64,000 nucleotides of DNA from Trichosphaerium sp. ATCC 40318 (Eukaryota; Protista; Tubulinea): NCBI GenBank assembly GCA_038496445.1, contig JALMLS010000455.1, positions 186,001 through 250,000 of the forward strand, written 5' to 3'. A program made the position numbers and the translations under genes. Each line of letters opens with the position of its first letter. Within the stretch, counting starts at the first letter, position 1. Below the pieces are notes generated by a model. The model had not been told where the DNA came from. It did no database searches and saw only the letters and a program-made list of their open reading frames with translations. Below are positions 15,788 to 58,637 of this stretch, piece by piece.

Positions 15788-17003
15788 ATGGACAAAGGTC
15801 AAACAAACCTTCCAGCTATTTTAAAGCAGTTTGGTCAACATGGCCGACGCTATGGCCCAATCGCCGCTTTAGCAGGTACGTATTTAATAGAAATCAAAGC
15901 ACGACGCTCATAAACGTAAAGGTATCGGTTTTGCTGCATTAACGATTATACCTGCTTGTATATTCAGAGTCGACGCTGGTCACCGCAGTGTAGTATTTAA
16001 CAGATTCTGGGGCGTCAAATCAAGGGTTTACGGCGAGGGAACTCATTTTAAAATCCCATGGCTTGAAAACCCGTATATTTACCTCATACGCCCAACGCCA
16101 ACTACCATGACAACAAGAACTGGCTCGAAAGATTTACAAATGGTTAACATATCTCTTCGCGTTTTGACAAAACCAGAAGAAAACAGGCTTCCATGGATGC
16201 TTTCACGCTTAGGACAAGACTATGAAAAACGCGTTTTACCTAGTATTGTAAAAGAAGTATTGGCATCAGTGGTGGTACGCTTAGTTTAGTTGCAGAGCCA
16301 GTTTTATACATTTTTCAGACAGGAAGCGTTACTACCGTACTAACACCTTTTTTAGGCTCAATTTAATGCTCCTCAGCTTGTAACACAAATCCAAGATGTC
16401 AGTACTCTAATGTCCGACAGACTAGAGTCACGTGCTCATGAGTTTGGCATTGAAATGACTGATGTTTCTATTGTAAGTGAAAAACTTTTCGATACTTGTC
16501 ATCAGCCATCCTAACTTTTATTTAGACTGAAATGACTTTCAGTCCTGATTTCAAACACGCTGTAGAGCTAAAACAAATCGGTATGTACGAACAGATGAGA
16601 AGTGATAACTTTTTGTCCTTTTTTTTCCTGAAACTCACTACACGTTATCACACCTAAGCGAGCAGCCATGTCATTCGCTTGTACTTTTATTATGAACCTG
16701 CTAACATTTTTGTTCTCTACAGCTCAACAGGATGCCGAGAAAGCACGTTATATGGTAGAGCGTGCACAACAAGATAAACGTAGTGCTATCATTAAAGCAA
16801 AGGGTGAAGCTAAATCAGCAGAAATGATAGGTGAAGCTATTAGAACTGATCCTACATTTATTACACTGCGTAAACTAGAGGCTGCAAGAGAGATCTCAAC
16901 TATTCTAGCTTCATCATCAAATAGAGTGTATTTGGATTCTGAGGCTCTTATGATGTCAGTTATTCGCGAAGACGCTGATAAAACAGATGAAGCCAACTGG
17001 TAG
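15788..17003 (+). CDS. PHB2: Prohibitin (PHB2-like)
   Basis: VDAGHRSVVFNRF, GEGTHFKIPW, TGSKDLQMVNISLRVL, RVLPSIV, AQQDAEKARYMVERA, LRKLEAAREIS. Confidence 0.9.
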
Positions 17004-20135: not shown

Positions 20136-20980
20136 ATGTTTGGTGTATCGCTTGTAAATCAACATACAATACCTTGTGTTGGTACATTATAGTTAATATC
20201 GTGTTCTTACGTTAAATTAGTATTGGACTGTATTGAGTGGCTAGAAGCATACGGTACGAGGCATTCTATTAGTACTAATTATTTATCTTCATTAAATAAG
20301 CTAGCCACAAAGCTGCTTTATTTCGTATATCTTCTGTACAAGGTGTTGATATAAGACTGAAAGTGCTTCAGTTTAAAGCACTATATGATAGTGGTATTAC
20401 GCAGAACTGACAATCGAAACTATTTAATTGTTGGAGTAGGTGCTGTAGTAGAATTTGTAACAGGAGATGACTTGAAATCATATGACATCATCACCATGGC
20501 AACTCTTTTAAAGACTTACTTTCGTGAACTACCAGTTGCGTAGCAAGAACAAAACTTTCGTTTGCATTACTTAATTTGGCTACAGGAGCCACTGTGTACA
20601 CTTGCATTGTACAATGATTTTCTCAAAGCAAGGCAAATGGATACATCTAATGCTATTGTTCACTTAAAGGCAACTACTCAGAAACTGCCTGATATCAACA
20701 AAGCCATGTTGTCCTTACTTATAGGATATCTACATCGTTTTTCAGAGTACAGACCGACAGTTTTTTTTCTTTCAAACAAAACTTTTGTTTAGCATTTTAT
20801 TTATCTATCAATAGAAACAGTCACGTGCACTTTATGGATGCTAAAAATTTATCCATAATATGGAGTTCTTATTTGCTTGAAAATCCAAGCATAGAAGTAT
20901 CACAGATGATTAAAGGGATCGTAGATGCACAACATGTTTTGACAGTTATGATAGAGAACTACGACGAAATATTTTGCTAG
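20136..20980 (+). CDS. Stand-alone RhoGAP domain protein
   Basis: MFGVSL...IPCVVLDCIEWL...ALFRISS (Arg finger)...ATLLKTYFRELPEPLCT...MDAKNLSIIW...LTVMIENYDEIF. Confidence 0.85.
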
Positions 20981-26500: not shown

Positions 26501-29500
26501 CATCATTGTTGTAAGATCCTAAGAACACATCACTAACACTTTCTTATCAATATATTATTTTAGATTGACTTATCATTATCAATTATGGAGCAAAAGAAGC
26601 ACCTTAAACACTGGGTTCATACCCTTAGTAAGTTTTTGCGTGGCCAAGACGCAAAACTCTACTCAGTGATAGTATATGGATCCAAGTTGGATGTTCATGC
26701 AGGAGACTTAGAAGCTACTAAAAAAGCGCTTTTCTCCTTCAATAAGATGTCGTCAATGTACCTTACATTTTGCTTTGATGGTACTTGATTTATGTTAAAC
26801 TAAGCAAGTCTCTAATGCCGTTTTAACAGGTGTTCCCGATCTTGTGAAGAAATTGAAGCGTCAGGCAAAATACATGAAGTCTCAATACCCAAAAGTACCA
26901 ACCTTTTATTACGAAGTACAAAAAGCCTTGAAGAAAGCAGTTGTGAACAAAGATAGATTGGAGGGTAACATCATATCATTGTACGTTGATTGTATTTACA
27001 GAAACGCTGATGAATAACATGAAATAGTGAACAAGCCATCAAACTATTGCCCAAGACTTGTAAAATGGCTCCAATTGAGTTGGTTGCCTCGTTAAATTAC
27101 CTTCACTCTATTGGTAGCATTATGTTTGATGAGGTACTTCTGCTAGCCTAAAACCGTTTTTCTATGAGCTTGAACTTGATTTAATTATCTTCTAGTCATC
27201 ATATATGTTGTGTTTAGACCCTCCGATTCTATCTCGTATTATGAGTGTCTTTGTTGCTCCTACAGAACATTTGAGTAGACTGCTGAATGATGAGTCGCGA
27301 AATCACTGTGCTGTATTCACAGATGCAGAGGCCCATTACCGCATCTCTAAGGTATTTGAACTGTGTACAAAGGATGAAAAGAAGCAAATGAAGCAAGTGA
27401 AGCAAGTGATGAGATTCTTGGTTGAACTGTCGTTTTGTGTTTGCTTGACAAAAGAAGAAAAGGTAGCACTTTGTAACATGTTTATTGGCGCATTATTTAC
27501 TTACTGTGGTTAGAAAGTTTATGGCTCAGACGGATACATCATAATTTCGTTATTGCCAAAAGCTGATATGTTATACTTTCCGCCTGTGACAGAAAAGGAG
27601 TCCAGTATCAATCTTGTTAAAAAAGGAAACAAGGAATTATCCACATTTTCTGAAGTGTTTTACTTGAGCAAGTTGCCAACAGAGTGGAGGTTGCTATCAT
27701 TCATACCTAAAAAAGATGATAGCTTTGAGACCAAGACGATTGAAACAATCAAAAAAAATCCAAATACCCAAAAAATAGTACGTTTGAAACACGTGTTCTC
27801 TTTGTCTTTTCTCAATTTTTTCTTTGTTTTCTTGTTTATTGTTAGTATTGCTAACCACCCTTTTTAGTCACTTCCTGACATATATGAGCACCTATCAACC
27901 ACTTCAAAGTTCTTAGCATACCAAGTCAGCGAAACTTCCATAGACGTATTTAATAACTTGCAAACAAGATTAAGAGGTAAGCACCAAAATAACGTTTTAG
28001 CTATACTAACAAAATATCTAGAGTTCCGAAACAAAGAGTTTCGCCTATTTTCGAATCTGATTGTATTGAATGATTTTTATGGTAACACAATTGTGCTGTA
28101 CTACAATAACATTGCCATAAATATTGTCATCAGAGGCAAGGTGCCGTGGTTATGGAAGGTACGATAGCACAAATATCATAGTTAAGTATTGAAAATATTC
28201 ACATATGTTTAGAAATGTATTGGTTCGTACTTAGCACCATTGGAAGGTAAACCAGTACAGCTATGCCCTGTTAGTATTCAAAACGGCCGTGTTGTTGAAG
28301 CTTCAAAACCTCCATATACGTTTGAACAAACAGGTAACCACGAATTGAAGGTCAACTATACTTACAACAATCTGATAGGAGATATTGTCACTGCCTCTCA
28401 CTTGAAAAACGGCTTTCCTGTACTGCCAATAAGCCACAATAGGTTGTGGAGCAGTCTTCATGGCGAACAATTTTTAAAACAAGGCGATTGGAAAGAGAAT
28501 AAGAAAAAGTATCCAGGTTTGAGATGGACTTCTCTCACAAGCCACGAAACAACCAAAGTATGTCTGACACCTTTTCCAACTTGATATTATCTTTACTGAC
28601 TGATCTAAACAGGAGCGTTGTGACGAGTACTTGAGAGCTCGCAATATGTTCTACAAGTTTATGGGTACTGAGAGTGAGTCGTTCTTTACACTGGAAAAGA
28701 TTGTATTCTTTGACAATCAAACGCTTGAAGCTGCATTCCAAAAAAAATATGAACAGCTTGTTGCTAAAGTACTTCAATCTAAATCTTCAGGTAAGTGATA
28801 GAACATTTTATAGCAATTCTTATTAATCCACCATTTAGATATTAGCGATAGCAAATTGAATACAGTCGATAAAGATAAACTTGAAGCACAAGAACGGACA
28901 ATGAACCATTTGAAAAACTATATTCTCCTTGTTTCTGGTAATGAGCAAATCAATCTCATTGGTGGGTTTCATGGCGCAACAGAGGTACTATCATCATATT
29001 AAGTATTCCACTTATACGCATACATAGGACATCAGTTTCTTAATTGCGACCCACAACTTTAGAGAGCCAGGAAAGTTAAAAGACCAGAAAGATCCAGGAT
29101 TCTTTGGTACCAACATTTAAAATACCTTTTGTTTTCATGTACATGTTTAACTTACTGTGTTTCCAAGGGAAGGGTATCTACTTTACACAATACCCAGACT
29201 ATGGTACGTGTCTATAGTCATGTGATTGAAGTTAATAGAGCTGTTGTAGGAAAGGTGTTTGCTGAGTGGCACAAGACAGATACTCCTTGTATGTTGATAT
29301 CGTGGGTGATGATGGGAAAACCCTATCCAGCTACCGAAGTTCCAAACCCTAGTGATCCAAACAGTCTCTGTGGAAAAGGATGCAAGGTAATCCATTGAAA
29401 TTACCCATTAATTAGGCTAACAATGTAAAAATAGGATGGATACGATTCACACTATGCTATTGTTAAAAAAACAACTAGTGCTCGCAATTGCCATCCTTGT

Positions 29501-30814: not shown

Positions 30815-32332
30815 TTACAAGTTGCATTTAAATACAGGTTTTCTTTTTTGAAAGAAAGCCATACTTGCTTCAGTAAGATCATCTGACATGAGATGAGTAG
30901 TGTTCCACATAGCAATATGATTTAATCCGTCTTCTGTAGTATGTTCTTGTGCGTAGTTCATTACAATTTTTGTTCCTTGAACAGCCAGTGGAGAATGAGA
31001 TGCTATGACAGTGCAAATCTGCGAAAAAAAATTAGTGTTATTGGCTGAAGTTTAATGAAATTGAGAGACTATTCAACTCTCGTGATTGAAAAATATCACA
31101 AGGTAGTCAAAAAAACAAGGTCATACAACTCTTGCAATCTCCTCCGGGAATCGAACCCGGGTTGGCAACGTGACAGGCTACCGTGCTAAACCACTACACT
31201 AAGGAGGATGTGTGTATAATTAGCTAGAGCTCTACCATCGTCCGCTCGTGAAACGGCATGGATGTTACAAAGAGTGTAATGCATGCGAAGTCTTTTCTTT
31301 TGAATAAAAAACCGAAAAAAAAAGGCATCTATCTTACCTTTAATGCTCCTTTAAGCATATCTTCCTTGTTCTCATATACTTGATTAACAAATCCGCTACT
31401 TAATGCTCTACCAGATTTGAGTGGTGCTGCAGTAAACGCCATCTCGCGTGCGAGACCCTTTTAAGAAAATTGAGTTAGAGATTTTCAGTTCTTACTATTC
31501 TTATCATCAAGAAACACGTGTTTACCTTTGGTACGACTTTTTGTATGCGTTGAAGTGTACCCAAATCAGCAACCATTGCAATAGCTGTCTCCTTTATAGA
31601 GAAGTATGCATCCCTGTTTTAAAACGTTATGTTAGAATTCACTCTTTGACAACTTACAAAAAACTAAGAAACTGGTTGAACTTACTTTGTACAGACTCTA
31701 AAATCTGCTGCGCAAATGACATCAACAGCACCACCAATACATGCGCCATGAATAGCAGCAATTACTTAGAGATCACAGTTAGTAACAGGCTTAAAGACGG
31801 TACTTTTGGATGGCAATACCTGGTTTTTTACACTTTTCAATGGATGATACTGCAGCTTGCCAGTTCAATATGTGAGTGTAAAGCTGATGTTTTCTAATCC
31901 CAAATGCGCCCATGTCGCTTGTCGCTGCTGCCAAGTCCAATCCGGCACAAAATAACTTGCCGTTCGCGTGGAGAACGATGGCACGTACCTAGGAGTTTTT
32001 GTAAGTGTCAGCGCACAAGTATTCGTTGTTTTAAGCGTAGAGACGGGCGCTGATGGCGACGTGGAACGGGAAACTGTATTTTACCGACTTTTGGTTTATT
32101 TCGTACGTTGATATCGTCTGCCAACGTGTCAAAAGTACTCCTGATCTCCATAAAGAGCTATTCCGAGTTAGTTTAAATTATCACGTTTAAACAAGCGTAT
32201 TTTACCTTGTGGTCCATCAAGTTAAGCTTTTTAGGCCTGTCAAGAATCTACAAGTCGTTATGAATGTACTTGCGTTTAAAACGTTACCACTTCAGCGATA
32301 TTGTTAGAAATTTTTACGGTTAACCTCTCCAT
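30815..32332 (-). CDS. ECH1: Delta(3,5)-delta(2,4)-dienoyl-CoA isomerase-like crotonase
   Basis: LDRPKKLNLM, VRAIVLHANGKLFCAGLDL, SIEKCKKP, AIHGACIGGAVDVICAAD, SPLAVQGTKIVMNYAQEH, IAMWN. Confidence 0.8.
31137..31208 (-). tRNA. tRNA-Asp(GTC), intronic in ECH1, with an imperfect acceptor end (possible pseudogene)
   Basis: TCCTCCT TA GTGT AGTGGTTTA GCAC G GTAGC CT-GTC-AC GTTGC CAAC CCGGG TTCGATT CCCGG AGGAGAT; T7 run ~20 nt downstream. Confidence 0.8.
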
Positions 32333-37593: not shown

Positions 37594-39658
37594 TTACTTC
37601 TTCATCATTTTTGATAACATCTGAGACATACCCAGCTTATTATGAAGCATTGACCTGTTCATATTTGGTGCTGAGTGACCTTGCCTCCGTACATTCTTCA
37701 ACATTTTACCCATCATCTAGTTCTTTATTTAAAAAAACGTTCAAGCAAAGATGTATTAACTGCGTACTTTATACTGATCAAACAACTGTTGTACTTCCTG
37801 AATTGATCTTCCAGAACCTTGAGAAATACGAGGATACCTCTCTTTTTTCACAAGAGATGGTTTTGCCATTTCTAGTTCGTGTAAGTTCAAATGTTGGGGT
37901 TTTTTTCCACTGTTGGTACCTTGATCTGTTAAAGAATCCATTACAGTGAGATGCTTCAAAAAAGCTTTAGAAGAATCATCAGGAAATTTTATATTATTGA
38001 ATCCAGGTAAGTCTCTACACACTACACAAAAAAGTCAATTCCGCAAGTACAACACGTGACAAAGCAGCGTTTTTTCTCCTATGTTTTTCTTGGATTTTTC
38101 TGTTTCGAACTTACTTTGACCCATGTTACCCATATCCATCATTTGCTCTAACATAGTACGCATAGCATACATGTCCCAATCGCCAGTGACAGCGTCACTC
38201 ATTGCCTGCTGTTTTGCTTTTGGAACTTGATTGAAAATCTTGGCAGCAGATTTAACACTTTGCATACCTAATAGCCTTCTTGCAAAGATATCCGCCTTTA
38301 AGTTTTATTAGTTGAAAACCATGTGCTTTAAACGGCCCTACATCAAACAATTCTATTTCTGTGAGCTTTTCACCGTTACCAATTGCTATTATTTGTGAAT
38401 CAGTAGCTGCAACCCTACGCTACTGTTAACGATAAATGGCCCACAACTAAAGTGTATTTGTACTTACGCGCTCAAAGCTCCTCCGCCTCTTGATGTGCCG
38501 TCCATCTTGGAAATAATGATGCCATCAATATGTAATGCGCTCTAACAAAACACTAAGAAAATATAGCATCACCTGTTTATCATTGTTACCTTAAAGGCAG
38601 CTGCTTGTTCGTAAACCATTTTACCCATGTTACCTTCCATAACCATAATTACCTTATCTGGTGTCTACCCTTACGCTTAGGATGATACGGGTAGTTGTAA
38701 ATAATAACGTACTATTGAAGCATGTATTTCTTTCATTTCTTCAATCAATTCTTCTGCTTGCATGTGTCTTCCTGACGTATCAATAAGAATAACCTCAAAA
38801 CCTGCTCCCTTGGAGAACTGTTAGCACTAAAAATCAGAATCAATCATTCTTACCTTGAATAAGTCAACACCTCTCTGGCATACCACAACAGGATCACGTT
38901 CATATTCACTACAGTGAAAGCGGTTTGTAAGGTTAAGCTGTCAACGAAATAGTATACTTACATTCCAAAGAAGTCTACTTTTGCACGTGCTGCATTTTGT
39001 TGTAATTGAGCGTATGAACCAGCGCGGAATGTATCTCCACATATTACAGCAGTACGTTTTCCTTGCTGACGGTATTTGTTTGCCATCTTTGTGAGTGTTG
39101 TAGTTTTACCAGCACCTGTAATCATTAGTTAGCATTCTAAAGAAATAGCTGCGCTTTATCGAAAGCCTTTTGTGAAAGCAAAAAACAACATTCATCAACC
39201 TCAGTTTTTACAATGTAACCAGGCAAAGTGCTGCTTGTTAGGTACATTCGCACATGGAAAAAAGTAAATCGGCGCACCTTGTAACCCTACAAACATAATC
39301 ACTGTTGATCCGATTGGATTCAACCTAAACTTAGGTTCTGAAGATTCGAGCATACCCCGCACTTCTTCCAGAATAATCTACGGTAATATGTTAAGAAGGA
39401 CGGAACAAGGACTTGTGTTAGTTTCCAACTTACTTGTTCTATTATTCGTCGTCGTGAAACAGCCTTTGCCATGTTATCAAGCTTGAGACGACCTTGGAGC
39501 TTCTTTCTTAGTTTTAATGTTATATCCATAGACACATCAGCCTCTAGTAAAGCGTTGCATATATCACCGAGGAGTTTTTGTATAACATCTGAGTTAATGA
39601 TTGTTGCCATTCTCATGTTATCGAAAGCCTTGTGTAATTGTGTTTTTAAAAACTCCAT
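37594..39658 (-). CDS. SRP54: SRP54-like signal recognition particle GTPase (divergent)
   Basis: ICNALLEADV, IMFVGLQGAGKTTT, DTFRAG, DTSGRH, SKMDGTSRGGGALSA; Met-rich M domain with RISQGSG. Confidence 0.85.
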
Positions 39659-39764
39659 GGTTGTATTGTATGTTGTATTGTTAACGTTTTGTGAAAAGGA
39701 AATACGTTGAAGAGGTCAAGTCAAGGACAATCTGGTCAGAAAACTGGTAGTTTTTTACATAAGT

Positions 39765-39825
39765 GATTACGTCATTTTTTATTTCGCCGTAATCGCAACA
39801 AGTCAAGTCACGTCACGTCAAGTCT
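39765..39825. promoter_or_regulatory. Cluster of CGTCA/GTCA motifs upstream of the SRP54-like gene
   Basis: ttacgtca and aagtcaagtcacgtcacgtcaagtc lie ~110-165 bp upstream of the ATG and resemble bZIP/CRE half-sites. Confidence 0.3.
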
Positions 39826-40521
39826 TCTACAATAAACGAAATTGTGACTAATACCGGTTGGTAATCACGATAAAGCCTGGTTAGATATATACACCACGGC
39901 TTTTTTATCAGTAAAAATAAGCCAAATATCCACGAAATTTCAACGGAACTTTATGCCACTTAGGATTAGGCAAAATTTACGTATACACGAATATAATTTA
40001 GAGTACGTATACTACCTGGCGGTTGAGTGTAAACTGTGAGCATAACATGTTCGGCACATAGTACAAATTTATTCATTTGTCTTTTTTACGCTAAGCTCAT
40101 TCAACAGCATTTCTTGCCTTTTTCTCAACTTTTCTCTTGAGGACCTAAAGCTGTTCAAAGGAGAGAACAATGCTAATGGAACTAGCGAATAATTACAGTT
40201 AGAACGTTGAATCTAATGGACCGATTACACAACCTCCATTTTTACTAATGTTTACTTTTACGGCTTGGCGCTTTTCTAGCGCCCTTTACATATCTGTGAT
40301 AAAAAACTTTGGTTAGAGTCTTTTTGAATTGTTGAGCCAAGTATCAAAGAATGGAGAAGCGAATCCTATTCATAAGAACACGTGTTAAAAATATACACCT
40401 AACGAATCATAAACCACAATTTTTTTCAGAAATAGCTTCTTCGGTTTTTATATCAAATCTTGACAAGAATTGACGAGGTGCTCCAATGTCAAACTGCCAA
40501 GCAAACAGTATCCTCTTCAAT

Positions 40522-40566
40522 AACTCTCCAAAAGTTGTGGCCTCGGTTCGATTCCGGGTAAGCACT
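40522..40566 (+). tRNA. 3' half of a circularly permuted tRNA, anticodon CCA (Trp-decoding)
   Basis: AACT CT-CCA-AA AGTTG TGGC CTCGG TTCGATT CCGGG TAAGCAC T. There is no D-arm upstream, and TAAGCAC pairs perfectly with GTGCTTA at 40645. Confidence 0.8.
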
Positions 40567-40568
40567 CC

Positions 40569-40642
40569 GTCATCTGTGGTGTAACGGTCAACATATCCAT
40601 CTCTAGCATTGAAGCTTCCAGTTCGACTCTGGGCGGATGACA
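40569..40642 (+). tRNA. Complete tRNA with anticodon CTA (amber), nested in the permuted tRNA spacer
   Basis: GTCATCTG TG GTGT AACGGTCA ACAT A TCCAT CT-CTA-GC ATTGA AGCT TCCAG TTCGACT CTGGG CGGATGAC A; full cloverleaf with one C:U mismatch in the anticodon stem. Confidence 0.75.
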
Positions 40643-40644
40643 TC

Positions 40645-40672
40645 GTGCTTATGGTGTAGTGGCAGCACTCAA
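40645..40672 (+). tRNA. 5' half of the circularly permuted tRNA(CCA)
   Basis: GTGCTTA TG GTGT AGTGGCA GCAC T CAA: acceptor 5' strand plus a complete D-arm, followed by AGAGGATACT, which is complementary to 40507-40516. Confidence 0.8.
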
Positions 40673-40756
40673 GCAGAGGATACTATGAACTCAGTGCTAG
40701 ATCTCATAACTCTATAACACAGAGATTCAATTTGCTGGCTATGACTCAATCACCCC

Positions 40757-40764
40757 TTTTTTTT
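40757..40764 (+). terminator. Pol III oligo-T terminator of the tRNA locus
   Basis: T8 run; the first long T run downstream of the 5' half. Confidence 0.6.
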
Positions 40765-40961
40765 GTTCAATGCTTTAATCTAGCACGCGCCAACACTGTT
40801 TTTGTGAATGGTTAAACTAAGGGTTGGTGAATTGGTACAAATCAAATAAAGGAGGCAGCATAACAGATAGAACAGAACTCCTGTAATACCTCTTTCAGCA
40901 GCAATATGAGACAAATGCAATGGTTTCAAAAAAAAGCAGAATTTGTGAAAGTTTCATTCTT

Positions 40962-43900
40962 TTATTGTTGACGTTCATATTCCCCTTCAAATACAGTCTC
41001 TCTATCCGTTTGTATATCAATGGTAGAAACATCTGTGTATTTAGCTAATTCCATATAAGTATAGTGAATCAATTACTTGGTAGTACTACTTACTTTGATG
41101 TCTATTTGAGTAATATGGGAAAACCTTATTTCTTAATGGTGGAATTAAAAATGTCAAGAATAATATGATAATACTCAAAGCAGCAACAGATCCTACTACA
41201 ATACCTACTATAGCACCAGTAGATAAATTAGTCTGATGTGCACATATATCAGCGAAGAAGAATACTACAATGAAAGAAGGTGAGAAGAGACAGGGCAAAC
41301 AACTACTTTGAAAGAAAAAAATACAACATCGCGATTTAAATACTAGCTAGTATACTCCGTAAGGGTTGCCCTTATTTTTGCGCAATGAATAATATAGAAT
41401 TCATAAGACAGGATTTGAAAAGTGATACAATCAATTATCACGTGTCATCAGCGAGATAAATTTCAATGAACAGTACCCAACAAAAGAGAACAGAGAAGCA
41501 CTTGCCTGAGTAGTAATGAGGTGGCTGGCGTGTTGTATAGCTACTACATTTATCAACTTCATCTATAACCATAAGATTAATCTTCCCTGAGCATGTTGGA
41601 TCCTTGCTCCCGTATTTTAACATGTCCATACTACTATCAACTCCTGTGTCAAAGACTTTTGAGAAGTTGATATTAAATACAACTTCATCAAGGCAAACTG
41701 ATCCTAATCGTTTTTTCCTTTGTTAGAAACTATGTTTAACGCTAAAAAGAAAAACCTGTTATGTGTATTATCGCATCATCTGATGAGAAAGTGATGCTAT
41801 TATTGAGTATGATATCACCAGTTATGATCAAAGGCTCTGATATGACGACTTTGATATCGGGAAGAGTTCTCGTTTCGTTGACAAGACAAGTCACTTCATA
41901 TGCGCCGTCTTCATTACACATTGCTCCCTTTATAATACGAATATTAGAAATAAAAAAAGGGCATAAGCGTACAGCAATGAGTGGAGGTGGAGAATCACAT
42001 TTACAGTTGTGCCCATACTTGTTTGGATTGCCAAAACATGCTGTAAAAGAACATTACAAAGATGTACATTTTTCTGTTATTTACGTAAACATCCGACAGG
42101 TAAACCCACATTATAGTACTGTACTGTATTATTCACTGGACAGCATACTTGAGTATCAGTTAACATGCTATAAATAAAAATGGTAAGATAGACAAACTTC
42201 GGAATAGAAGTAATTATTGTGAAAATATACAAAAAAAGTCCACAAAAAATTAATCAAATCCATCAAAAAGGCCAACTTTTGTTAAACCTTGATACGCACA
42301 TGCTGATATCAGACTCCACCAAGAAATCTATCACAGTTGTTAATGTGAGAAACAAAAATAAAAGGGAGATATCTTGTCGTGAGTGATTCTATGTAAAACA
42401 ACAAGAAATAGCAATGTTGCTCACTCGCATGATTTGTTTTATCACGAAGACTTGAAATACCCAAAAGTGAGAAACGAACTTGAATTAAATTGGCTTTACT
42501 CGCCAAAAAGAAACTTATGTAGTATTTCTTCATCAAGAGCTTATAAAGTCTGAAAATGGATAGACCATTTGGCTAAACTGGCTATTTTTTGGGAAACAAA
42601 TTTTTCACAATTCTGCTTTACAATCTCTTATGTTTGTACCTGTTTGACCACCAATCATTTTGTTACCACCAAGAAATATTGTTCCCTTCGCTTCTAAGAA
42701 GTAAGGCAACATTGATTCTGTCAAAAAATCAGTGAGATTATTGTTGTTCAAGTAAATAGCTGCGTCATTCTGAAAGATCTCTAGAGGAATTTTTCCATAA
42801 AACTGATTGTGGTCCAATGACATAGAACCCCCGTATCCAAAATTAATAGAGTGCCAATCCTGTTTTGTCAAGTCACCAGTAAGATTGTTGAAGCCAATAT
42901 TACTAGTCGTTTTTTTAAGCGCTTAACCCACCAGTTGTTTTTTCATTGAAAAAAAAACCAGAAAAAAACAATAAACTTTTTTGGCTGAAAGTATTGCTAC
43001 CTCCTGAAAGATTTTGGAGACAGTAAAGATGTCATCACCACAAGCAAATCTTCATTGTTTGATCAACAAAAATAAATTGTTTTGAGAACGTACACACTTG
43101 ATACATTGAATTTGATAGATCTTGCAAAGTTATCAGGTAATTCTCCGCTAAACAGGTTTCGCCGTATTGAGCTACAGTAAACATCCGTTTAATTACATGT
43201 TCGCGATAGAATAGGTTTATACTTACTATATTGTGAGGTTTTGTAGGCCCAGAGGAGTCATAGGCAGGGGTCCTGATATCCAATTGTCATACAAAGAACT
43301 TACAAAAAAAAGGTGAGCATTTTGAATAGAGCAATTTCACGAGGTAGTATATCACGTGACGCACAATAAGGTAAGACCATCCATGTGACTAAAATCATCT
43401 GTGATACTTGTAAATTGGTTCGAATCCAAGTGACTATAGAGGTTGTAAGCTTAAACAAAAGAAAAACACTTGAGAACAAAACACGAATTACACTTACAAA
43501 AAAATAAGAACTGACGATTCAAACCGTGGTATATGTCCTGTAAAGTTATTTGCACGTAGATTGAGTATTTCCAAATTAGGTAATTTGGCTATTGGTGTAA
43601 TATTTCCACTTAAGAAGTTATTGGCTAACAACCTAATAAAAGTAAGGGGAAGGCAACTTAAACACAAACGTACAATACTGTTAAGTTATGGAGCTGACTA
43701 ATGGATTCTGGGATTTCTCCACTCAATTTATTCCCACTAAGCTCCCTAAACTCATTAGTGATATAAGGTTTATCCTACAGTACAAGTAGTCGAGGCTGCG
43801 TAAGTTGCTCAGATCAGGAAAAATGCTATCAATGCCACATTGAGACAAATCTCTTTTTTCGAAGTTAAGGAGACAAAAAATAGTCTTATCAAAAAGAGTA

Positions 43901-56300: not shown

Positions 56301-58637
56301 GAGGATGTGGGAGTGGAATACTAAGTGATTTGTTGTAGGCAACAGCAACAAAAGGTAGAAAAAACAAAAAAGAGAAAAAAGTTGATGAGTGGAGAAGTCT
56401 CCCAGTAAAAGAGCGCTTAGCGCACTCCCTTGTTGAGGGTATTCATAAATACATTGAAGCTGATACAGAAGAAGCAAGACTTCTAGTATGTAACCGGTGT
56501 TTTTTTTCGTTGTTTTCTAATGGTTGTTTTTTCTTAAGCTTAAAGTACCACTCAAAGTCATTGAAGGTCCATTGATGGATGGTATGACTATTGTCGGTGA
56601 TTTATTCGGATCTGGAAAGATGTTTTTGCCTCAAGTCATTAAGAGCGCTCGTGTCATGAAAAAGGCTGTAGCACATTTGATTCCATTCTTGGAGGAAGAA
56701 AAAGCTAAAAACGGTACAAGTGGTACAGATGATGACTCTCAGTACGCTGGAAAGGTATGTAGCAGTAAATGAGGTTTAAAATTACGTCTAACAAGCGCTA
56801 CAGATCTTGCTGGCTACTGTCAAAGGTGATGTACACGACATTGGTAAAAATATCGTGGGCGTCGTTTTGGGTTGTAACAACTACAAAGTTATCGACCTTG
56901 GTGTCATGACACCTTGTCATGAAATCCTTGAAGCAGCTCAAAGAGAGAATGTTGATATTATTGGTCTTTCTGGCTTAATCACACCTTCTCTTGATGAAAT
57001 GTGTTTTGTAGCTAAAGAGATGGAACGTATGGGTATGAAGATGCCACTATTGATTGGTGGAGCTACTACTTCCAGAATCCACACAGCAGTTAAGATCTCA
57101 CCTAATATAACTACTCCTTGTGTTCATGTTGTCGATGCATCAAGAGCTGTTGTTGTAGCAGGAAACTTGTTGGATCAAGATGAAGAAACCCGTGAAGAGT
57201 ATATTGAAGATGTTAGTATGACTTACGAGGAGTTACGCGAAGAACATTACGCTAGCTTGAAAGATAGAAAGTACCTCACTTTGGCTAAAGCCCGAAGTAA
57301 GTGTTTGAAGCTTAAATGGAGCCAAGAAATGCTTCCTACAAAGCCTAATATGCTTGGTGTACAAGTATTTGACGTACGCGTAGATAGAAGAGAAGAAAAA
57401 GTTTGAATTTAGTGACTTATTGACTGACTTTTTTTTAGGACTTTTCTTTCGAAGAATTGTTACCTGCTATTGACTGGAACCCTTTCTTCCAAGTTTGGGC
57501 TTTACGTGGTAAATACCCTAACAGAAACTACCCAAAGATCTTTAATGATCCTGGTGTTGGTGCTGAAGCTAAGAAAGTATTCGATGAAGCTCAAGTATTA
57601 CTCAAACGTATTATTTCTGAAAAGAGGTTGACTGCTAAGGGTATTGTTGGTATTTTCCCTGCTAACTCTGATGGTGATGATATCATTGTCTGGAAGGATG
57701 AAAAACGACAGTACGCAACATAAACAAGCACTCTACAAAAACCTGTTTTTCCTCATTTTTCTTTTTTGTAGAGAACCACGCGCACGTCTGTTTGGTCTAA
57801 GACAACAATCACAAAAGGAAACTGATCACCCTTACCTTTCTTTTGGCGATTTCATTGCACCTGTAGAGACAGAACTTAAAGATTACATTGGCATGTTCGC
57901 TGTATCTTCTGGATTCGGTTGTGAGGAATTTGTAAAAGAATTCCAAGATGATAACGATGACTACAACGCAATTATGGCAAAGGCCTTGGGTACGTAGAAG
58001 AAAATGGAAAACACGCTACGCGTGAATGTTTTGTTTAAAAAAATCATTACTTACTCCTTTACTAGCTGATCGTCTTGCTGAAGCATTTGCTGAAGTATTG
58101 CACGCTAAAGTAAGGCGTGAAATTTGGGGATACGCAAGGAACGAAGCTTTATCTGTAGAAGACTTCCTGAAGGTTAAATACCAAGGTATTAGACCTGCTC
58201 CTGGTTACCCTTCACAACCTGATCATACTGAAAAATTGACTATGTGGGACTTGATGAATGTTGAAGAAAAGACTGGCATCGTGTACGTTTTCACGTTTAT
58301 TTTTTGATTACAGCGGCTGTTGTTGCTTTATGAGTCTTTTTGTTAACCTAGATGCTAACTTTATTTGTAGTCTTACTGATCACTTGGCAATGAACCCAGC
58401 TGCTTCAGTATGTGGTCTATATTTTGCTAATGCAAAGAGCCACTACTTTGCTGTCGGTAAAGTACAAAAAGACCAAGTGCGTAAAACTATTCTAATTTCT
58501 AGTTTTTTTTCTCTATTACCCGTACTTGCTTTGTACTTATACTTTTTTTCCAGGTTGAGGATTATTCACGCAGAAAGGGCATGGATGTTGCAGAATGTGA
58601 AAAATGGCTTTCTTCTCAGCTCGCCTATGAGCCATAG
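53308..58637 (+). CDS. MTR: Cobalamin-dependent methionine synthase
   Basis: [27 protein letters not shown]12 motif [13 protein letters not shown]...SGLITPS...[26 protein letters not shown]. Confidence 0.97.

Follow-up and report, generated by a model that had tools for sequence, protein, structure and literature searches.

A tRNA gene whose anticodon reads the stop codon UAG raises the question of whether its host decodes that codon or whether the anticodon is a property of one gene copy. In the 64-kb window, the whole stretch of DNA analysed here, ARAGORN found two tRNAs, and one of them was called at 40569-40642 (+) as a 74-nt tRNA with the anticodon cta. A local Rfam scan placed RF00005 over 40570-40641 end to end with a score of 39.4 bits (gathering score, 29; E, 5e-7); the alignment spanned positions 1-71 of the 71 in the model and the score exceeded the gathering score, so that the module qualifies as a canonical cloverleaf. 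The same tRNA had been overlooked by the whole-window Rfam scan with fast filters.

The acceptor stem of this tRNA is formed by UCAUCUG and CGGAUGA with one G-U pair, U8 is present, and the D stem (GUGU/ACAU) encloses a loop with G18G19. The anticodon loop in the window reads C32 U33 C34 U35 A36 G37 C38, the variable region has 4 nt, and the T arm consists of UCCAG/CUGGG with the loop UUCGACU. The CUA loop with U33 and a purine at position 37 (G37) and the C29:U41 mismatch, all described in an earlier note on this DNA, were confirmed in the sequence, by ARAGORN and by Rfam, whose local alignment flagged the 29:41 pair as non-standard. G40569 and C73 (40641), if paired, would give an acceptor helix of 8 bp; this part of the earlier description stands as a possible pair, and the His-like reading attached to it has nothing behind it beyond that one pair. 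The window-form cloverleaf was computed at -13.6 kcal/mol, compared with -20.0 for the MFE fold, in which the anticodon arm is open; modifications and tertiary contacts lie outside this model. Because the anticodon stem is predicted to be thermodynamically marginal, even in the CUC form that is described below, decoding by any copy of the module is not certain.

As to its class, the body of this tRNA has U1:A72, a D arm of the GUGUAACGG type, four nucleotides in the variable region and the UUCGACU T loop. We take U1:A72, the GUGUAACGG-type D arm, the 4-nt variable region and a CUCUCAC loop to be features of cytosolic tRNA-Glu, as in yeast and human; the YUC anticodon with A37 that belongs to cytosolic tRNA-Glu is absent from the window copy, which has CUA and G37 instead. 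ARAGORN labelled the module tRNA-Pyl, a label that follows from the anticodon alone. tRNA-Pyl has a 6-bp anticodon stem, a 3-nt variable loop, one base between the acceptor and D stems and a small D loop without G18G19; in contrast, U8 and G9 both separate the stems here, GG is part of a D loop of 8 nt, the anticodon stem is 5 bp long, and a 4-nt variable region and a canonical T loop complete a module whose architecture is not that of tRNA-Pyl. A tRNA-His was rejected on the anticodon, which is CUA (CUC in RNA) and not GUG despite the possible G-1:C73 pair. A tRNA-Sec was also rejected, as it needs a UCA anticodon, a long variable arm and a 9/4 or 8/5 fold, whereas this module has CUA, a 4-nt variable region and a 5-bp T stem.

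TAG is used as a stop codon in the window. The earlier note had named four genes in which TAG is a true stop, and this held for the crotonase, PHB2 and MTR, while the family of the RhoGAP was not confirmed, as the exon concerned (TAG at 20978) had no Pfam match. In particular, the enoyl-CoA hydratase domain found by Pfam ends 6 residues before the ...SKL-TAG at 1701; the alignment of prohibitin-2 extends to 285 of 299 residues and leaves 10 query residues before the TAG at 17001; and in methionine synthase, whose TAG lies at 58635, the alignment of the last 27 residues comes within 2 residues of the C-terminus of solved chains. The hydratase gene (1509-1703, +) has -SKL, the peroxisomal targeting signal type 1, directly before the TAG, and its next in-frame stop is a TAA 5 codons on; UAG readthrough would thus bury the peroxisomal targeting end. 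TAGs with a long open frame on both sides occurred twice in the window, both in a Roco gene and both as the ...TAG acceptor ends of short in-frame introns. No sign of TAG as a sense codon was seen in the window's long open frames outside introns, and the sense use of the cognate stop that would mark a stop-codon-reassignment tRNA was not found. The earlier view that TAG is not globally reassigned is therefore well founded, as TAG ends three conserved genes and the in-frame TAGs are intron ends. The Roco introns (27455-27513 and approximately 27790-27867, +) are stop-free bar the terminal TAG, and together with their flanking exons they form 323 codons that are open but for two TAGs and could be mistaken for amber readthrough.

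The amber-type tRNA occupies the gap that separates the two acceptor strands, 3' and 5', of a circularly permuted tRNA almost exactly, with spacers of 2 nt and 3 nt (Table 1). Joining 40645-40669 to 40521-40567 gave a clean cloverleaf, called Trp(CCA) by ARAGORN for the window sequence; the 3' part lies upstream of the 5' part and the two can be re-joined to a cloverleaf, which is the hallmark of a permuted tRNA gene. The junction lies near position 26/27, where the sequence and its inverted repeats indicate a 10-bp helix followed by an internal loop of 3 x 5-6 nt. No bulge-helix-bulge motif was found at this junction; the helix and internal loop occupy its place. Back-joints, which would denote circular RNA, were absent from the RNA contigs, although contigs are no reliable display of them. 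The leader and the tail had no Rfam family match. By folding, the leader (40477-40520) and the tail (40685-40756) are predicted to form a long interrupted terminal stem, and the tail a separate hairpin. There was no second copy of the nested body or the tail within the 64-kb window. The upstream motif TGACAAGAAT showed no enrichment in the window and was missing upstream of the tRNA-Asp gene, and scans for bacterial-type promoters and terminators, which are irrelevant to this host, returned nothing. An origin of the tail as an antisense remnant of the 5' half of a tRNA with a CUAG loop is not claimed: the local alignment had a shuffle p of ~0.04, and the 11-mer alone drives the score.

Table 1. 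Features of the transcribed unit and its borders (window coordinates).
Feature	Coordinates	Strand	Basis
TATA-like box TATAT, ~30 nt upstream of the first transcribed base; putative promoter element	40447..40451	+	Sequence; same in the paralogue flank
Transcribed unit: both tRNA modules, leader and 72-nt tail	40477..40756	+	RNA contigs X8, X9 and X2
Closing helix, 5' strand, 10 bp	40507..40516	+	Perfect inverted repeat I4 with 40675-40684; present in the MFE fold
Outer tRNA, back part: anticodon arm, variable region, T arm, 3' acceptor strand, U73	40521..40567	+	Un-permuted join folds; sequence
Outer anticodon: CCA in the window, GCA in RNA contigs X2 and X8	40528..40530	+	RNA comparison; ARAGORN Cys for the G form
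G at position -1, pairing with C73 (40641) possible	40569..40569	+	Sequence; within the ARAGORN call
Nested tRNA module, probably Glu-type, positions 1-73	40570..40641	+	Rfam tRNA, 39.4 bits, full length
Anticodon CTA (amber-reading)	40603..40605	+	Sequence, ARAGORN, Rfam alignment
Variant dinucleotide AG (A36 G37), CA in X2, X8 and X9 RNA	40605..40606	+	RNA contig comparison
Outer tRNA, front part: 5' acceptor strand, D arm, position 26	40645..40669	+	Sequence; join; acceptor strands form inverted repeat I1
Closing helix, 3' strand	40675..40684	+	Inverted repeat I4
3' tail	40685..40756	+	With the leader, best-kept part between paralogues: 1 listed difference in 72 nt
Part of the tail that is complementary to 40602-40612, the loop and 3' stem strand of the nested tRNA	40691..40701	+	Inverted repeat I5: 10 Watson-Crick pairs and 1 G-U in the window form
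T9 run, Pol III-type terminator	40757..40765	+	Sequence; three RNA contigs stop at 40755/40756
Perfect 9-nt inverted partner of 40605-40613, just past the terminator	40766..40774	+	Inverted repeat I7

The closing stem with a complete tRNA in the acceptor gap, both on one very abundant transcript, is a more valuable observation than the CUA anticodon. We found no published report of a permuted tRNA with a complete tRNA lodged between its acceptor ends, and our literature search returned no paper on permuted tRNA genes in amoebae. This nested and permuted arrangement bears on how permuted tRNA genes without a bulge-helix-bulge motif are processed.

Contigs of four public runs (X1, X2, X8 and X9) were compared with window positions 38900-41400. 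X1 represents the window's own strain, and X2, X8 and X9 come from three other studies with other organism labels; X8 and X9 are recorded as RNA-seq, and X2 was taken as RNA from its spliced, adapter-carrying contigs. The contigs that cover the unit spanned 40477-40756 in X8, 40499-40755 in X2 and 40529-40756 in X9, and in X8 and X9 the unit was the only part seen of the 2.5-kb stretch. The X2 contig is bounded by Illumina adapters at both ends, at 40499 and 40755, and therefore represents a discrete insert; its depth was 563, compared with 7-13 for neighbouring mRNAs (~50-fold). The orientation of the adapters, compared with that on a minus-strand neighbour gene, placed the unit RNA on the plus strand. 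In X2, X8 and X9, what accumulates is the whole unit, from which the nested tRNA has not been cut out. Either this unit or a near-identical twin is thus abundantly transcribed as a Pol III-type RNA that retains the nested tRNA. The earlier proposal of a tRNA nested in a permuted gene was borne out, and the RNA contigs show both modules co-transcribed. Ordinary RNA-seq libraries lose mature tRNAs, so that a missing excised 72-mer is uninformative.

The RNA starts ~93 nt upstream of the nested tRNA and ~30 nt downstream of TATAT, which argues against the earlier suggestion that the nested tRNA serves to supply promoter boxes. TATAT also opens the upstream flank of a 92% paralogue; this flank is otherwise unlike that of the window, and it shares TGACAAGAAT too (X1 record 3). 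The 5' ends of the RNA differed, being at 40499 in the abundant X2 RNA and at 40477 in the X8 contig, where homology to the paralogue also starts. This difference may reflect 22-nt 5' trimming or a reverse-transcription stop within the terminal stem.

The X2, X8 and X9 contigs were identical to the window over 228-280 nt except at three bases. All three RNA contigs have C for A at 40605 and A for G at 40606; the nested loop thereby becomes CUCUCAC, with the anticodon CUC and A37, and ARAGORN called the nested module with these two bases tRNA-Glu(ctc). At 40528, G replaces C in both of the RNA contigs that reach this base (X2 and X8), which changes the outer anticodon to GCA, and the outer module was then called tRNA-Cys(gca). 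U73 is the universal Cys discriminator. The outer body is thus Cys-type, as the expressed GCA anticodon matches U73, and the window copy has a Trp anticodon (CCA) on a Cys-type body. The CUA form is known from the window DNA only and was not found in RNA among the contigs of the four runs, although contigs drop minor variants. The earlier note had held that reads with a different anticodon would count against it, and this is partly what we observed: otherwise identical RNA in three libraries has CUC and A37. X1, from the same strain, had no contig of this unit and contained only the 92% paralogue; its spliced contigs of both flanking genes showed zero differences from the window over ~775 nt. 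X2 differed from the window by one base in a neighbouring mRNA and hence represents another strain. Because neither GCA/CUC DNA nor CCA/CUA RNA was seen, an allele, a paralogue, editing and an assembly error are all compatible with these comparisons.

All three differences between the window and the RNA fall in the two anticodon loops. If two neutral events fall on 257 sites that are all equally free to change, the chance of this is ~1 in 1000, and with change restricted to loop and linker positions it is a few percent; the clustering hints at selection or at strong constraint everywhere else. Misreading of modified bases by reverse transcriptase was rejected as a source of the differences, as the changed bases are the sole contig-consensus bases in three libraries and yield canonical loops. 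Metagenome contigs gave no match to the nested body with N at the anticodon or to a degenerate acceptor and D-arm pattern that fits both paralogues. Additionally, exact-product look-ups of three ORFs in or near the locus were blank, and a word-based homologue search with a 275-aa MORN-repeat ORF 9 kb away gave no match at E 1e-10.

The sequence around the terminator offers a mutational route to the AG dinucleotide. In the window form, the tail is complementary to the nested loop and 3' stem strand, and the CUC form loses two central pairs of this complementarity (40602-40612/40691-40701). In the inverted repeat that reaches past the terminator, the 40605-40613 side begins at the two variant bases. 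With the CUC form as the initial sequence, we enumerated all 2502 possible tandem substitutions in the unit, a test that was designed after the repeats had already been seen: 1.7% of the substitutions created an inverted repeat of at least 9 nt across both changed bases, and 0.36% also created a second one of at least 7 nt. The change from CA to AG does both and is the best among 9 alternatives at its own site. Judging from these repeats, the AG most likely arose by one-step template switching (a quasi-palindrome mutation) at nearby imperfect inverted repeats; with one templated mutation, selection for an amber anticodon would be unneeded. For the outer G34-to-C change, no inverted repeat accounts for the substitution, and complementarity falls. 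TCTAGCA or its reverse complement TGCTAGA occurs three times in 190 nt round the terminator (40602-08, 40695-40701 in the opposite sense and 40779-85), and 40694-702 and 40778-86 form a perfect 9-nt inverted repeat (I8) that spans the T9 run.

The 92% paralogue (X1 record 3, X2 record 7) was rebuilt from contig difference tables. Its nested acceptor, D and T stems are intact, although three G-U pairs have become A-U and an A-U pair of the nested D stem has become G-U, and its outer acceptor is kept by a compensatory change from G1:C72 to A1:U72. The nested anticodon arm is broken by 4 indels, with 3 pairs left, and the outer anticodon is CAA with G37. The leader and tail together showed 1 listed difference in ~112 nt, whereas the 164 nt that make up the tRNA modules differed by 17 substitutions and 5 indels. 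By this pattern of differences, the nested 'top half' and the terminal domain are constrained between the paralogues and the anticodon arms unconstrained. The pattern leaves room for a reading of the nested cloverleaf as a structural cap or as a handle for RNase P/Z. The outer anticodon was different in each known form: CCA in the window, GCA in X2 and X8 RNA and CAA in the paralogue. In X1, the paralogue lies in a 656-nt contig that aligns to window positions 40477-40763 and extends ~316 nt past the T-run; the paralogue may be subject to read-through or lie inside a longer transcript.

Our favoured explanation, to which we give about even confidence, is that a dicistronic Cys/Glu tRNA gene is present in the window as a copy or allele with shifted anticodons, CUA being a by-product of one templated mutation. 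The coherent ancestral gene was presumably a permuted tRNA-Cys(GCA) capped by tRNA-Glu(CUC). The nested body appears to be Glu-type, and on this explanation CUA is a derived two-base variant of one copy or strain and not the sign of a changed genetic code, because the otherwise identical RNA in three data sets has CUC. In the mechanism that we propose, a Glu-type cloverleaf would occupy the gap between the acceptor strands of a circularly permuted Cys-type tRNA, and Pol III would make one RNA of ~260-280 nt, with a TATA-like box near 40447, a start near 40477 and a stop at T9 (40757). In the usual expressed RNA, the outer module would read Cys GCA and its nested partner Glu CUC/A37; in the window copy, the tandem change from CA to AG in the nested loop (giving CUA and G37) would have arisen in one step via template switching at imperfect inverted repeats, and the outer G34-to-C change would be a separate event. 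The window copy is probably transcribed, as every other base of the expressed form is kept in it, and release of its modules by RNase P and RNase Z may be possible. In E. coli, GluRS reads positions 34-37 and the Glu identity elements include C36 and A37, so that a released CUA tRNA would be expected to be a poor GluRS substrate. The CUA product would be, at most, a weak and tolerated suppressor.

An explanation that is unlikely but carries appreciable weight is that the nested module is non-decoding in all copies, either within a stable structured ncRNA or within a precursor of the outer tRNA only, and acts as a cap or RNase P/Z handle while its anticodon drifts. The accumulation of the intact unit, at a depth ~50-fold above that of neighbouring mRNAs in X2 and as the sole stretch seen in X8 and X9, speaks for this explanation, and the paralogue agrees with it, having lost its nested anticodon arm (4 indels, 3 pairs) while preserving the acceptor, D and T stems and the outer acceptor. 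The distribution of differences (1 in ~112 nt of leader and tail, 22 in 164 nt of the tRNA modules), the unfavourable nested anticodon stem in both the CUA and CUC forms and the variation of the outer anticodon (CCA, GCA, CAA) also fit. However, the abundant form consists of two coherent tRNAs, GCA with U73 and the Glu loop CUCUCAC, which would be unexpected of a mimic; the leader and tail belong to no Rfam family; and the lost 72-mer says nothing in its favour, as standard RNA-seq drops mature tRNAs. We give little credence to the idea that the CUA tRNA is a selected, working amber suppressor which is released by RNase P/Z, is charged with Glu or Gln and causes low-level or regulated UAG readthrough under a standard code. 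The Gln synthetase reads C34 U35, and A36 is usually accompanied by a modifiable purine 37 (m1G in Leu- and Phe-type tRNAs); here, A36 arrived together with G37. The copy is identical to a highly expressed unit save for its anticodon-loop changes, and the restriction of differences to the anticodons is contrary to what neutral decay predicts. There are also precedents in the Glu-bodied CUA tRNAs of Blastocrithidia (PMC12153298) and in the tolerated amber suppressor gene of Dictyostelium (PMC2661138). Nevertheless, no CUA RNA was present in the contigs of the four runs, TAG ends conserved genes, one of them with the -SKL end that readthrough would bury, and the window's long coding stretches have no in-frame TAG; the anticodon stem is weak and mismatched, the simultaneous outer change to a Trp anticodon on a Cys-type body is left unaccounted for, and the AG change has a purely mutational explanation. 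The earlier note had named as readings a natural amber suppressor, an edited tRNA and a non-decoding mimic that supplies processing sites and promoter boxes, and its interpretation is supported in part. For the suppressor there is the CUA in the DNA, while the CUC/A37 of the RNA, the apparently Glu-type body and the wrecked anticodon arm of the paralogue speak against a dedicated amber tRNA, and the amber-suppressor interpretation is less likely than an anticodon-shifted copy. More speculative still is an abundant Pol III RNA family of permuted tRNAs capped by a complete tRNA (GCA/CUC, CCA/CUA and CAA/degenerate), whose copies would vary little outside their two anticodons, in which variable anticodon loops would be selected and an RNase P/Z-released, Glu-bodied UAG reader would serve programmed low-level readthrough.

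RNA editing would have the gene encode CCA/CUAG and the RNA be altered after transcription to GCA/CUCA, restoring coherent Cys and Glu tRNAs. The only DNA seen is indeed CCA/CUAG and the only RNA seen GCA/CUCA, and the three differences are exactly those that make the incoherent modules coherent. However, C to G, A to C and G to A are not deaminations, the chemistry would be unprecedented, and we know of no such anticodon editing; moreover, the RNA runs come from other strains, with other labels and, for X2, the one-base difference in the neighbouring mRNA, and X1 lacks a contig of the unit. We therefore regard editing as highly improbable. An assembly error at the three bases, with GCA/CUC as the true sequence, seems just as hard to credit: it is at exactly these bases that the window departs from three independent, mutually consistent RNA data sets, but the differences are three substitutions with no indels and none in a homopolymer, unlike long-read errors, and the same-strain contigs of the flanking mRNAs match the window with zero differences over ~775 nt.

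The anticodon-shifted copy that we favour belongs to a documented process in nuclear tRNA genes, for which predictions of a 'possible suppressor' are included (Rogers and Griffiths-Jones 2014, PMC3923123). As in those copies, the body is kept and the anticodon substituted, and stop-complementary anticodons are among the outcomes; unlike them, the change here is tandem (positions 36 and 37), a second module of the same transcript is shifted, and the gene is nested in a permuted tRNA. Peritrich ciliates read UAR as Glu. Blastocrithidia has Glu-bodied tRNA(CUA) and tRNA(UUA), of which the CUA tRNAs arose from duplicated tRNA-Glu genes, and this is a eukaryotic system able to use Glu-CUA tRNAs (PMC12153298). 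The window copy shares with it a CUA anticodon, on what is probably a tRNA-Glu body, whereas UAG is sense throughout coding sequences in Blastocrithidia and the ciliates; in the window, TAG terminates conserved genes, and the long open frames are free of in-frame TAG outside introns. In Dictyostelium, according to PMC2661138, which cites Winckler et al. 2001, an engineered amber suppressor tRNA gene is tolerated, and amber-mutant CbfA is at ~5% of the wild-type level. That case is similar in being an amoebozoan cell with a CUA tRNA gene beside the standard code and with partial suppression, and it is different in that the gene was made in the laboratory, while the copy in the genome assembly is known from DNA only. 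An expressed and charged CUA copy would represent a natural amber suppressor in a free-living eukaryote with the standard code and a snapshot of the first step to a UAG-to-Glu reassignment, as in Blastocrithidia and peritrich ciliates; the evidence points the other way.

Permuted tRNA genes were reportedly described by Soma et al. in 2007 in Cyanidioschyzon merolae, some green algae and nucleomorphs. The unit resembles genes of the C. merolae type in that the 3' part lies upstream of the 5' part on one transcript, with an intervening sequence for removal by RNase P and RNase Z; it differs in that the intervening sequence is a complete tRNA, the junction is at ~26/27 with a 10-bp helix and no bulge-helix-bulge, and the host is amoeba-like. 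Permuted tRNA genes are also mentioned in PMC4494063. We also compared the unit with YrlA and Y-RNA-type RNAs, which are similar in being of Pol III size, in having their ends paired in a long stem and in containing a permuted tRNA-like domain. Here, in contrast, the anticodon arm is still present, a whole tRNA rather than a loop caps the acceptor end, and there is no Rfam match.

The unit is flanked by a minus-strand SRP54 gene (Pfam SRP54_N and SRP54) and by another minus-strand gene, a downstream one of LRR type, both of which are spliced and expressed as judged from the RNA contigs. A tRNA-Asp(GTC) gene at 31136-31208 (-) scored 46.4 bits in Rfam. The top of its acceptor is mismatched, with T1 opposite T72 and C2 opposite A71 (TCCTCCT against AGGAGAT), and the gene would appear to be either a damaged copy or a tRNA that requires 5'-end repair. 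Directly upstream of it lies a TATA-like ATTATACACAC, and a T7 run is found ~20 nt downstream.
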